This document shows positions 1,218 through 4,233 of a stretch of DNA of 64,000 nucleotides, in pieces. The notes under the pieces were generated by a model that did no database searches, was not told where the DNA came from, and saw only the letters and a list, made by a program, of their open reading frames with translations. The stretch's first letter is position 1. Each line of letters begins with the position of its first letter. The position numbers and the translations under genes were made by a program. The DNA lies in the sequence record NC_026927.1; one strand, 5' to 3'.

Positions 1218-2692
1218 TGTCTAACAAGTTCTACACCAATGTTCAGCTTTATGGTAACAACATCCTCCTACGCGGGTATGAGAATGGAGAGAAGTTTCAC
1301 ACTAGGGAACAATACTCTCCCACACTATATGTGAGTTCTAAGAAACCTAGTGAGTGGAAAACACTTACTGGTGAGAATGTTCAACCAGTGAAACCCGGAT
1401 CTATTAGAGATTGTAGGGATTTTATCAAGAAGTATAAAGATGTAGAGAACTTTAATGTGTTTGGTAATGAGAGGTTTGCCTTTCAATACATTGCAGACAA
1501 CTATCCTGGGGAGATTGAATATGATCCTCAGTTGATTAATATCTTGAGTTTGGATATTGAGGTTGAGTCTGAACATGGTTTCCCAGATCCAGAGTCTGCT
1601 AATGAGGAAGTACTACTCATTACTATTCAGGACTATGTTACCAAACAAATCATTACTTGGGGTCAGATAAAGCATGGGGAGTTTGATAACCAACAGGATA
1701 ATGTAGATTTCCGTCCCTGTGAGAGTGAGTATCACCTACTGAGTGCCTTTATTCAGTGGTGGCAACAGAACCCACCTGATGTTATCACTGGGTGGAACAT
1801 TGACTATTACGATATTCCATACCTCGTTAGACGTATGAAGAGGGTGTTGGGTGATAAACTAGCAAGCACTATCTCCCCTTGGAAGTTCGTAACAGACGAA
1901 GAGCACTTCTTCAAGGGTATGAATAAACTATATTATAATATCGCTGGTATTACCCAACTAGACTACCTAGTTTTATACACTAAGTTCACATATACGAACC
2001 AAGAGTCATACAGACTAGACCACATTGCTAATGTGGAGTTGGGTCAGCAGAAGTTAGACCACTCTGAGTTTGAAACTTTCAAAGACTTCTACCGAAAAGG
2101 TTGGCAGAAGTTCGTAGAATATAACATCGTTGACGTGGAACTGGTTGATAGGATGGAAGAGAAGTTGAAACTCATTGACCTTGCCATCACTATGGCGTTT
2201 GATGCCAAGGTTAACTTCCAGGATGTATTCTCACAGGTGAGACTATGGGATACTATTATCTATAACTATCTCAGGGATAGGAACATTGTTATCCCTCAGA
2301 AGGAACAGACTAGTAAGAGTGAGAAGTTCGCTGGAGCATATGTAAAAGAACCCAAACCCGGTCTATATGAATGGGTGGTGTCCTTTGACCTCAACTCCCT
2401 GTATCCTCACCTACTAATGCAATACAACATCTCTCCAGAAACATTGATGGAAGAGAGGTGTCCTAATATCTCCATTGAAAAGGTTCTCAATGAAGAAGTA
2501 ACCTTTGAGATGTATAAAGACTATGCTGTTTGTCCTAATGGGGCAATGTATCGCAAAGATGTCCGCGGGTTCCTACCAACCCTAATGGAAAAGATGTATG
2601 ATGAACGAAAGGCGTTCAAACAAAAGATGTTGAAGTCCAAACAAATCCTCGTTGATATCGAGGCTGAAATGAAAAGAAGAGGTGTATTATGA
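1217..2692 (+). CDS. gp43: family B DNA polymerase, N-terminal part (3'-5' exonuclease and motif A)
   Basis: ExoI LDIEV, ExoII GWNIDYYD, ExoIII YNIVDV, motif A SFDLNSLYP; ends in the fingers region with TGA. Confidence 0.95.
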   Translation: MSNKFYTNVQLYGNNILLRGYENGEKFHTREQYSPTLYVSSKKPSEWKTLTGENVQPVKPGSIRDCRDFIKKYKDVENFNVFGNERFAFQYIADNYPGEIEYDPQLINILSLDIEVESEHGFPDPESANEEVLLITIQDYVTKQIITWGQIKHGEFDNQQDNVDFRPCESEYHLLSAFIQWWQQNPPDVITGWNIDYYDIPYLVRRMKRVLGDKLASTISPWKFVTDEEHFFKGMNKLYYNIAGITQLDYLVLYTKFTYTNQESYRLDHIANVELGQQKLDHSEFETFKDFYRKGWQKFVEYNIVDVELVDRMEEKLKLIDLAITMAFDAKVNFQDVFSQVRLWDTIIYNYLRDRNIVIPQKEQTSKSEKFAGAYVKEPKPGLYEWVVSFDLNSLYPHLLMQYNISPETLMEERCPNISIEKVLNEEVTFEMYKDYAVCPNGAMYRKDVRGFLPTLMEKMYDERKAFKQKMLKSKQILVDIEAEMKRRGVL

Positions 2693-2847
2693 GTTTTCGT
2701 CACAAAACATATGGTGGTCTAGTTCATTATGACCACAATGATAAGATTATAGTCATTGAACGTCGATTGAATCCAATGCAACATCACGCTATGCTTGTGA
2801 GTAAGTTGAAGGAAGAGTATCCAGAGTATCAAGTAGTTACTGGATAG
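2689..2847 (+). CDS. small hypothetical protein inside the split gp43 locus (52 aa)
   Basis: own translation MSFRHKTYGG...YQVVTG; ATGA overlap with the gp43 N-part stop and TAGTG overlap with the next ORF. Confidence 0.6.
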   Translation: MSFRHKTYGGLVHYDHNDKIIVIERRLNPMQHHAMLVSKLKEEYPEYQVVTG

Positions 2848-3062
2848 TGAGTGGTTTAGTTGCTGAGATTATGCAAGTCGTTACTATGATTACTATGCTA
2901 TTCAATATGTGCAATAGTAATGAGTTCAACAGACAAGCATGTATGAAAGACTGGGATACTTGGTTATTACCTGAGATATCCCGTGCGTGGCAAATTAAAA
3001 CAGGTCAGGAAGCCCCTTACCAAAACGAGGAAGATGTGGTAGAATGGCACCAACAGCAGTGA
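2847..3062 (+). CDS. small hypothetical protein inside the split gp43 locus (71 aa)
   Basis: GTG start overlapping the upstream stop; hydrophobic N-terminus. Confidence 0.6.
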   Translation: MSGLVAEIMQVVTMITMLFNMCNSNEFNRQACMKDWDTWLLPEISRAWQIKTGQEAPYQNEEDVVEWHQQQ

Positions 3063-3069
3063 GGTTTTT

Positions 3070-4233
3070 ATCGGCTATCTTATCGGTGGAGACTCTGAGG
3101 AGAAGCAGGAGGAGATTGTACAATCAGATAGTGACTATTCTAAACTATCTGATAAGCAACTGCAATACCTAAGAGCACAAACCATAAAGGATATTGCTAA
3201 GTTTTATAACTTCCAGCAAGTAAGGAAAATTACCCTAAACTCCGCTTATGGTGCTTTGGGTAACCAATACTTCAGATACTACAAACTGGCGAACGCGGAG
3301 GCAGTGACCTTCTCTGGTCAGTTAAGTATCCGTTGGATTGAGAATAAGATGAATGGATTCATCAATGAGATTCTAAAAACAGAGGGTAAGGATTATGTGA
3401 TCGCCTCTGATACTGACTCTATCTACATTAACTTTGGTGATGTGGTAGATAAGTTCTTGAAGAAGTTTGATGGTGATAAGGAGAAGACTGTATCAATGGT
3501 AGATAAGATCTGTAAGGATCAACTAGAACCCTTCATTGATAAGTGCTATTCTCAGTTGGGTGAGTATGTGAATGCATACGAACAGAAGATGCAGATGAAG
3601 AGAGAGAATATTGCAGATAGGGGTATATGGACAGCGAAGAAGAGATATATCCTGAACGTGTGGGATAGTGAAGGTGTTCGTTATGAGGAACCTAAACTGA
3701 AGATGATGGGTATTGAGGCTGTGAAGTCATCTACACCTGCCCCTTGTAGAACTATGATCAAGGATGCTCTCCGTATTATCATTGAGAAATCTGAGGATGA
3801 AGTCATTGACTACATTGATGATTGTAGGAAGAAGTTCAAACAGATGAAACCAGAGGAGATCGCGTTTCCTCGTTCCGTTAGTGATATGATCAAGTTTCGT
3901 TCTGGGACAACAATATATGCTAAGAGTACTCCTATGCATGTGAGGGGGGCGTTACTATTCAATCATCACATTAAGAAGGGTGGGTTGGAGAACAAGTATT
4001 CTCTCATCAATAGTGGTGAGAAGATCAAGTTCTGCTACCTCAAGATTCCTAATCTAATTGGTGAGAATGTTATCTCATTCATCTCCGACTTTCCTAGGGA
4101 ACTTAAGTTGGAGAAGTATGTTGATTATGATACCCAATTCAATAAAGCATTCCTAGATCCACTCAAGATCATCTTGGATGCTATTGGTTGGAACTGTGAG
4201 AAGCAGATGTCCTTGGAGTCATTTTTTACCTGA
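3070..4233 (+). CDS. gp43: family B DNA polymerase, C-terminal part (motifs B and C, thumb); start placed at a non-canonical ATC
   Basis: motif B RKITLNSAYGALGNQYFRY begins upstream of the track's TTG at 3256; motif C ASDTDSIY; frame open from 3043; GAGG at 3061-3064 precedes ATC at 3070. Product is certain, start is inferred. Confidence 0.85.
   Translation: MGYLIGGDSEEKQEEIVQSDSDYSKLSDKQLQYLRAQTIKDIAKFYNFQQVRKITLNSAYGALGNQYFRYYKLANAEAVTFSGQLSIRWIENKMNGFINEILKTEGKDYVIASDTDSIYINFGDVVDKFLKKFDGDKEKTVSMVDKICKDQLEPFIDKCYSQLGEYVNAYEQKMQMKRENIADRGIWTAKKRYILNVWDSEGVRYEEPKLKMMGIEAVKSSTPAPCRTMIKDALRIIIEKSEDEVIDYIDDCRKKFKQMKPEEIAFPRSVSDMIKFRSGTTIYAKSTPMHVRGALLFNHHIKKGGLENKYSLINSGEKIKFCYLKIPNLIGENVISFISDFPRELKLEKYVDYDTQFNKAFLDPLKIILDAIGWNCEKQMSLESFFT

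Follow-up and report, generated by a model that had tools for sequence, protein, structure and literature searches.

Synechococcus phage ACG-2014f, a T4-like cyanomyovirus, encodes its replicative DNA polymerase gp43 in two adjacent genes, gp43A and gp43B, and our data indicate that the second of them is very probably translated from an AUC codon. The stretch of DNA analyzed here, called the window in the following, comprises 64,000 nucleotides (nt) of record NC_026927.1 and is 100% identical to GenBank KJ019059.1/NC_026927 (isolate Syn7803C90). In GenBank, two coding sequences of this region are called "DNA polymerase," and the second one is started at TTG 3256. A first-pass annotation, made from the letters alone, had proposed ATC 3070 as the start of gp43B, since the frame upstream of TTG 3256 is open to a TAG without ATG, GTG, or TTG, since the polymerase motif B is encoded upstream of this TTG, and since a GAGG motif precedes the ATC by 5 nt and overlaps the stop of a 71-codon open reading frame (ORF). 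Each of these elements was found in the sequence: behind the TAG at 3040 to 3042, frame 1 stays open over 3043 to 4233, there is no in-frame ATG, GTG, or TTG between 3043 and TTG 3256, motif B (RKITLNSAYG) is encoded upstream of the TTG and coincides with that of RB69 gp43 in an alignment, and GAGG is at 3061 to 3064. Codons 3043 to 3072 read AAT GGC ACC AAC AGC AGT GAG GTT TTT ATC, of which ATC 3070 is the sole one that is one base off ATG. With 71 start-less codons 5' of its first canonical start, gp43B is an extreme outlier beyond chance among the 76 ORFs of at least 100 amino acids in the window (median, 4.5; next longest, 29). A general habit of the genome was rejected as an explanation of this run, as no other ORF of this size in the window exceeds 29 codons; the ORFs with the two next-longest start-less runs (50420 and 56086) had nothing unusual about them.

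The position of the start is best seen from the homologues. A protein search with 3070 to 4230 gave thousands of matches, and most of the best 120 that were inspected are proteins of 386 to 388 amino acids that cover the full query with 70 to 81% identity and begin with MGYLIGG; one homologue (P0014) is a 384-amino-acid form that begins at a Leu codon. The 387 amino acids of the reannotated gp43B are the modal length of the metagenomic family. A pattern scan for GYLIGG(N14)DY on IMG/VR and metagenome contigs, from which chance matches were removed by requiring motif B, yielded, together with loci fetched earlier, at least 129 loci with at least 75 distinct junctions of gp43A and gp43B. Among the matches listed (75 distinct junctions), GYLIGG is preceded by ATG in 38, GTG in 18, TTG in 1, ATT in 12, and ATC in 6. 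Since the ATC of the window aligns with the codon that precedes GYLIGG, it is the orthologue of the start codon of the family; in marine relatives numbering in the hundreds, this codon is AUG. Indeed, the closest metagenomic relative (L019; 95% identical protein) reads ...GAGGAGTATTAA-ATG-GGA-TAC, with a homologue of the 71-codon ORF (ORF71) ending directly 5' of the ATG, and L021 reads GGAGGAACTAAGTA-ATG-GGA-TAT. In other relatives, an in-frame TGA is found three codons 5' of the ATC (TGA GGT TTT ATC in L069/L194 and TGA GGT TCT ATC in L140), so that in L069 and L140 the ATC is the only candidate start. Furthermore, L203 has an in-frame TAG four codons 5' of an ATT, and in L034/L055 and L183 none of the codons from the upstream stop to the ATT or ATC is a canonical start. 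Across the clade of L140, L069, and the isolates, ATC or ATT has been retained. As a side observation, gp43A of L019 is called as two overlapping genes (1148 to 2624; 354 plus 156 amino acids), which points to a frameshift or assembly error in this contig.

Forty-five ACG-2014f records, apparently 41 isolates and 4 RefSeq copies, share the split. Sixteen sister genomes (L003 to L018), in which every identity class was covered, were compared with the window (17 genomes in all). The codon at 3070 is ATC in the window, L013, and L015 to L018, ATT in the other 11, and ATG in none; ATG at 3070 was found in no relative of the ACG-2014f clade. The GAGG at 3061 to 3064 is unchanged in 17 of 17 genomes, and position 3067, between the GAGG and the ATC, is T, A, or C. 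The differences among isolates at 3072, 3075, 3079 to 3081, and 3084 are synonymous in frame 1, and the variable sites in 3070 to 3255 fall on codon positions one, two, and three in a ratio of 10/7/34, with a clear dominance of the third position; the residues encoded from 3073 on are under purifying selection. Together with the family identity of ~70%, these synonymous and third-position changes argue that 3070 to 3255 is translated and that translation starts at or just before 3070. The start at ATC 3070 claimed by the first-pass annotation is thus strongly supported by its homology to the M-GYLIGG start of the family, by the lack of ATG there in relatives of the clade, by the in-frame TGA codons of two close relatives, and by the purifying selection downstream of it.

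The annotated start of gp43B varies between the sister genomes. No ATG, GTG, or TTG precedes motif B in the window, L007 to L012, and L014. At 3064, five of the 16 sister genomes (L013 and L015 to L018) have GTG instead of the GTT of the window, and GenBank starts gp43B there; L004 (KJ019146.1) has a TTG at 3079; and L003, L005, and L006 have a GTG at 3220, a start that would remove most of the second finger helix. Judging from identity class and annotated feature order, the 45 records would divide into about 17 of the GTG-3064 type, 2 of the TTG-3079 type, and 26 with neither. At the equivalent of 3066, a T is present in the out-groups L069 and L140 and in every deeper isolate lineage, and therefore, GTG 3064 is a derived canonical start, two codons 5' of the Ile codon. 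In sum, the start of gp43B is annotated at four different codons across the isolates (equivalents of 3064, 3079, 3220, and 3256), the calls at 3220 and 3256 cost the protein its second finger helix and motif B in part or entirely, and of the 45 ACG-2014f records, most and probably all have a wrong annotated start.

Variation around the junction is uneven. In the 17 genomes, the first 186 nt of gp43B (3070 to 3255) are hypervariable, with 27% of the sites variable versus ~7% in the rest of gp43, and 3088 to 3105 consists of mosaic blocks (DSEEKQ, SSEGPD, and AGEGPD). The small inserted ORF52 (3 of 156 sites variable) and 3000 to 3065 (2 sites) are near-invariant; in ORF71, the variable sites by codon position number 7/3/16. 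This mosaic variation suggests recombination around the inserts.

Where is the polymerase split? gp43A aligns to RB69/T4 gp43 up to residue ~493 and gp43B to residues 531 to 901 of RB69, and motifs A, B, and C are present in one copy each across the two proteins. Comparison with the unsplit gp43 of S-H38, Sf-FP1, S-PM2, and S-RIM50 revealed that no part of the polymerase is missing. The break is in the short loop between the two long finger helices (...KKMLAAKQ / ...KDIAKFNN), with extra segments of ~12 residues on gp43A and ~35 on gp43B. Two adjacent genes on the same strand hence make up one whole family-B polymerase in which nothing is missing or duplicated. Since nothing is missing relative to unsplit gp43, ORF52 and ORF71 are inserts and not parts of the polymerase, and the N terminus of gp43B must be near 3070. 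ORF52 homologues are found at the same place in L019, L069, L140, L183, L107, and L074, and ORF71 homologues in L019 (74 amino acids), L140 (66 amino acids), and L069 (34 amino acids, with an in-frame internal deletion); a search of IMG/VR with ORF71 gave one locus only. Pfam had no match for ORF52, ORF71, or a 65-amino-acid ORF of L021, and the precomputed Pfam matches of the gp43B homologues are PF00136 and PF20286 only. A split intein was also considered and rejected, as the extensions measure only ~12 and ~35 residues and lack terminal intein motifs (C-intein HN plus Cys/Ser/Thr). Judging from the contigs, the split-fingertip family-B polymerase is widespread in marine cyanomyoviruses.

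A split of gp43 at the fingertip is known from the T4-related Aeromonas and Acinetobacter phages 25, 44RR, 31, 65, and 133, studied by Petrov, Karam, and co-workers. According to the passages of their papers that deal with it (PMC2988022 and PMC3061061), the family-B polymerase of these phages is likewise made from adjacent genes 43A and 43B, with the break at the fingertip, the genes are separated by 2 bp to ~3 kb of DNA, in which a homing endonuclease is encoded in some cases, and the halves of phage 25 copurify and are active; a start-codon problem is not mentioned in these passages. By analogy with phage 25, and given the viability of the isolates, gp43A and gp43B of ACG-2014f probably assemble into an active polymerase. 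In contrast to the Aeromonas and Acinetobacter phages, the cyanophages form a separate and very large cyanomyovirus lineage with a conserved junction of its own (...KRGL-stop/M-GYLIGG), and our literature searches brought up no publication in which the split gp43 of cyanophages or its start codon is described. A second parallel is the engineered split Pfu polymerase, also of family B, which was cut at the fingertip and is fully active when expressed by termination-reinitiation from a bicistronic message with an overlapping AUGA (PMC3061061). The AUGA restart of Pfu mirrors the UAAUG or UAGUG of the cyanophage relatives without insert; the halves in the window are separated by two ORFs and the restart would be at AUC, whereas the Pfu split is artificial and restarts at AUG. 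The third parallel is offered by the fractured genes of Dassa et al. (2009; PMC2677866), split inteins accompanied by free-standing homing endonucleases at cyanophage-like metagenome loci, where essential replication genes of marine cyanophages are broken in two with a homing-endonuclease gene in between. Like those loci, one class of gp43 junctions with an ATT start carries an HNH-endonuclease-like ORF (see below), but the gp43 halves have extensions of ~12 and ~35 residues instead of intein halves.

With respect to its start codon, gp43B resembles infC and pcnB of Escherichia coli, functional genes that can start only at a near-cognate AUN codon preceded by a Shine-Dalgarno motif and whose AUU starts have been verified (10.1101/063800). 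Owing to the near-cognate start, expression of these genes is low and subject to proofreading by IF3 (PMC2268962; 10.1101/063800). In gp43B of the window, L007 to L012, and L014 as well, the frame lacks ATG, GTG, and TTG from the upstream stop up to the indispensable residues. Furthermore, a near-cognate codon occupies the position of the canonical start of the orthologues, and a Shine-Dalgarno motif is at working distance (GAGG at 5 nt in the window and GGAGG at 4 to 6 nt in the other ATT/ATC contexts). The differences are that the codon is AUC in the window and AUU in most sisters, that the product is not IF3, and that the case is known from sequence alone.

Closer inspection of the junctions of the family revealed where the unusual codons occur. 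In at least 24 distinct junctions without insert, the gp43A stop overlaps the gp43B start (...KRGLK-stop, with UAAUG or UAGUG) and the genes are in different frames; in L097, stop and start are one base apart, also without insert. All 25 insert-free junctions among the matches listed start with ATG or GTG. Some of them (L046, L053, L080, and similar ones) read G-GGT-TTG-TAA-TG and have a −1-slippery-like heptamer directly 5' of the stop, which would lead into the gp43B frame; a programmed −1 frameshift at this heptamer (G-GGU-UUG, e.g., in L046) was rejected, as most other insert-free junctions lack it. Among the matches listed, 37 junctions carry inserts of 70 to 1,942 nt, which contain the ORF52 family, the ORF71 family, the 65-amino-acid ORF, lipoprotein-like small ORFs, or HNH-endonuclease-like genes, and the gp43A/gp43B junction is an insertion hotspot. 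All 16 ATT/ATC junctions with readable upstream sequence have an insert (70 to 1,538 nt), and 21 insert-bearing junctions retain a canonical start; the association of ATT/ATC with inserts has a Fisher P value of 6e-5, from observations that are not phylogenetically independent. Within this sample, ATT and ATC always follow a strong Shine-Dalgarno-like motif and are confined to junctions in which gp43A and gp43B are separated by extra ORFs. The predicted pairing with the anti-Shine-Dalgarno sequence is also stronger in the ATT/ATC leaders (median of −9.8 versus −8.1 kcal/mol for the others; P = 0.007).

On a gp43B tree, ATT/ATC and canonical starts must have been exchanged for each other at least seven times, and several of these changes reflect the spread of one leader sequence among lineages. 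This leader (...agagatgctRtgtgcYGGAGGnnnTT-ATT) travels with an HNH-endonuclease-like ORF of 151 to 155 amino acids (phrog_374). In five variants of it, GGAGG and ATT are kept and the flanking "codons" change nonsynonymously (P/L/stop, G/V/E, and L/V/I), and a GTG five codons 5' of the ATT is lost in two of them; such a pattern would be expected of a ribosome-binding site and start codon and not of a peptide. L077, with a gap of 70 nt between gp43A and gp43B, has the same leader (GTGCTGGAGGGACTT-ATT) but no endonuclease gene; its gap may be either the remnant of a deletion or an untranslated intercistronic insert as described for Aeromonas phage 44RR. Independent contexts of ATT/ATC number at least three, namely, the ACG-2014f clade, the HNH leader, and L183, whose relative L074 has UAAUG at the same junction.

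In our model, the phage produces its replicative family-B polymerase as two chains, with the cut at the fingertip, and gp43B would be translated from AUC 3070 into 387 amino acids beginning (f)Met-GYLIGG, with the initiator tRNA reading the near-cognate AUC aided by the GAGG five bases upstream. The gene order is gp43A-ORF52-ORF71-gp43B; the first two junctions have overlapping stops and starts, and the ORF71 stop is 7 bases 5' of the gp43B start. Given this chain of coupled ORFs (ATGA, TAGTG, UGA-7-AUC), terminating ribosomes may feed the AUC, and those finishing at the UGA of ORF71 probably contribute to initiation. Tight coupling cannot be the general rule, since the upstream stop is ~46 nt from the start in the HNH-cassette class and the ORF71 homologue of L140 stops ~25 nt from it. 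Reinitiation after termination needs IF2, IF3, and a Shine-Dalgarno motif, and IF3 discriminates against such codons (PMC2268962). In E. coli, AUC and AUU initiate at ~1 to 2% of AUG (0.02 to 3% across constructs), and a Met N terminus from AUC was confirmed by mass spectrometry (10.1101/063800).

Several points weigh against initiation at AUC or against its meaning. In E. coli, AUC initiates translation very weakly (10.1101/063800), and GAGG is a short Shine-Dalgarno motif. The predicted RNA fold of 3020 to 3110 is no better than that of shuffled sequence (z = 0.5), with no significant structure around the start; a regulatory hairpin at this site was therefore rejected as a candidate. In the 17 sister records with a GTG two codons 5' of the Ile codon, the latter could be internal, and the same holds for most HNH-cassette loci with their GTG five codons 5'. 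Finally, the link of ATT/ATC with inserts goes back to ~3 independent origins.

At the level of sequence comparison, the position of the start, the lack of a canonical alternative, the stability of AUC/AUU in the clade, and its recurrence in other lineages have been shown; a regulatory role of the weak codon is hypothetical. The weak codon may offset the strong ribosome-binding site acquired with the inserted DNA and keep gp43B low or matched to gp43A, and it may make gp43B synthesis sensitive to start-codon proofreading by the IF3 of the host; control of gp43B by host IF3 is, at most, conceivable. The autoregulatory loop of infC as such was discarded, since gp43B is a polymerase subunit and not IF3. 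That AUU/AUC is a selected, recurrent device, in which the insert breaks the UAAUG coupling and a strong Shine-Dalgarno motif plus a weak start restores a low, gp43A-matched output tied to host IF3 and physiology, we consider rather unlikely. That gp43B initiates at 3070 and AUC/AUU has no regulatory meaning, being a near-neutral change that arrived with inserted DNA, is quite conceivable, if short of probable; the codon would be tolerated because very little gp43B is needed. T4 gp43 is kept low by autogenous repression. In line with a neutral change, ATT and ATC occur only in the insert-bearing junctions, with few origins, and canonical starts were regained or are present in GTG 3064 of one sublineage, TTG 3079 of L004, and ATG of L019. 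On the other hand, the AUC/AUU state is stable over a diversified clade and always paired with the strong Shine-Dalgarno motif at a spacing of 4 to 6 nt, and the 18 of 75 distinct junctions listed that have ATT or ATC are far above the usual frequency of these starts in annotated bacterial genomes (10.1101/063800).

Other explanations do without a start at AUC 3070. Recoding from ORF71, by a +1 frameshift or a stop bypass at CAG-CAG-UGA, would yield an ORF71-gp43B fusion that needs no start codon; the end of ORF71 is only 7 bases 5' of 3070, frame 1 is open from 3043 already, and 3020 to 3065 is near-invariant among isolates. However, the required event would differ between genomes, since the frame relation varies from a +1 shift in the window to an in-frame TGA in L069 and L140 (readthrough) and an in-frame TAA followed directly by ATG in L019, where no recoding would be needed. 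In addition, the ORF71 homologue of L140 ends ~25 nt earlier, most of the family is without any ORF71, a slip from CAG to AGU allows no re-pairing, and there is no slippery site at CAG-CAG-UGA, all of which makes recoding very unlikely. Group I introns are carried by T4-like phages, and gp43 could be a single chain if 2693 to 3069 were a self-splicing intron; Gregory et al. took adjacent pieces of one gene as intron-split (PMC5112629). The first-pass annotation had named an origin of the protein by splicing from gp43A as an outcome that would overturn its proposal, and this is contradicted from three sides. An Rfam scan of 2300 to 3500 (E ≤ 10) gave no intron family but only a chance miRNA match, the 25 distinct insert-free relatives among the matches listed are still split (24 with overlapping stop and start in different frames, L097 with one base in between), and both ORFs of the interval show conservation at the protein level. 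We regard the intron as highly improbable.

The annotated TTG 3256, or another downstream codon, could be the true start, in which case the C-terminal piece would be truncated and the polymerase crippled or dispensable; TTG 3256 is, after all, the first canonical start in the frame and the one chosen in GenBank. Its product would be without the Lys, Asn, and Tyr of motif B, whereas codons 3073 to 3255 are conserved as protein (~70% identity in the family), with the changes among isolates mostly in the third position. Moreover, the isolates were triply plaque purified on Synechococcus WH7803 (PMC5112629) and are hence viable phages, which leaves this start with hardly any credibility. An assembly or consensus error at C 3072, with ATG as the true codon, can be practically dismissed. 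No support for such an error was found: the GenBank record is identical, the 16 sister genomes have ATC or ATT, as do IMG/VR and metagenome contigs, and the contigs of relatives assembled from four independent metagenome runs have only C or T at 3072. The comparison of the homologous codon, recommended by the first-pass annotation, gave ATC or ATT in all ACG-2014f genomes compared and ATG, GTG, TTG, ATT, or ATC at the junctions of the family. Initiation at AUC 3070 is therefore the reading we prefer.

The coordinates of the split polymerase locus are compiled in Table 1. The gene order is regA (just 5' of the window), hsp20, two DUF6561 genes, gp43A, ORF52, ORF71, and gp43B, followed on the 3' side by two small ORFs, uvsX, a 2OG-Fe(II) oxygenase gene, gp41, and mazG. 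Just 5' of the DUF6561 genes and gp43A, the segment 484 to 541 contains a G+C-rich hairpin plus T-run and, behind it, TTGCCC-16-TATAAT with TG, the best sigma-70-like promoter match in the region; no terminator-like site was found on the plus strand from this element to 4233. The element is likely the start of an operon that contains both polymerase halves. A further promoter-like sequence (TTACCA-17 nt-TAGAAT, with TG upstream) is found at 3017 to 3045, inside the coding sequence of ORF71, and ends 25 nt 5' of the ATC. Its hexamers appear to recur in L019 and, judged from the encoded C terminus, probably in L140; promoter-like matches of this kind are no commoner here than in shuffled sequence. 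If real, this promoter could provide gp43B with a short-leader transcript of its own.

Table 1. Features of the split gp43 locus (positions refer to the window)
Feature	Position	Strand	Remarks
gp43A, N-terminal polymerase subunit, 491 amino acids	1217..2692	+	Exonuclease domain, motif A, first finger helix; C terminus ...IEAEMKRRGVL-stop; from ORF list and GenBank DNA polymerase
ORF52, small inserted ORF	2689..2847	+	ATG overlaps gp43A stop (ATGA, 2689-2692); matches phrog_3538, of unknown function
ORF71, second inserted ORF, frame 3	2847..3062	+	GTG overlaps ORF52 stop (TAGTG, 2845-2849); TGA 3060-3062; matches phrog_3571
In-frame TAG closing the gp43B frame on the 5' side	3040..3042	+	
Shine-Dalgarno-like GAGG	3061..3064	+	5 bases 5' of ATC; overlaps ORF71 stop; predicted anti-Shine-Dalgarno duplex, −7.7 kcal/mol
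GTT in window	3064..3066	+	GTG in L013 and L015-L018 (GenBank gp43B start there)
ATC, proposed gp43B initiation codon	3070..3072	+	Homologous to ATG/GTG/TTG start of M-GYLIGG family
gp43B as reannotated, 387 amino acids	3070..4233	+	Fingertip extension, second finger helix with motif B, motif C (DTDS), thumb
Motif B, RKITLNSAYG	3223..3252	+	Essential for nucleotide binding; aligns with RB69 K560/N564/Y567; 5' of annotated start
TTG, GenBank-annotated start	3256..3258	+	Would yield 325-amino-acid protein without motif B

In sum, the cyanophage gp43B joins two known kinds of genes, the split-fingertip gp43 and the genes with a rare start codon. What adds to its interest is that AUU or AUC is found at about a quarter of the junctions listed in a large and environmentally abundant family. 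To our knowledge, hardly any AUC start has been verified in a bacterium or phage; in the present case, viable and abundant viruses of the ocean appear to depend on one for an essential replication protein. Gene callers limited to ATG, GTG, and TTG keep truncating an essential enzyme and dropping its motif B, in metagenomes as well as in isolates, and the database entries of 337 and 338 amino acids are truncated gp43B calls of this kind. Furthermore, the natural ATG, GTG, ATT, and ATC variants of one junction in sister lineages constitute a comparative system in which it may be asked how the strength of the start codon, the strength of the Shine-Dalgarno motif, and coupling set the stoichiometry of the two polymerase subunits, and how cyanobacterial ribosomes handle near-cognate starts.

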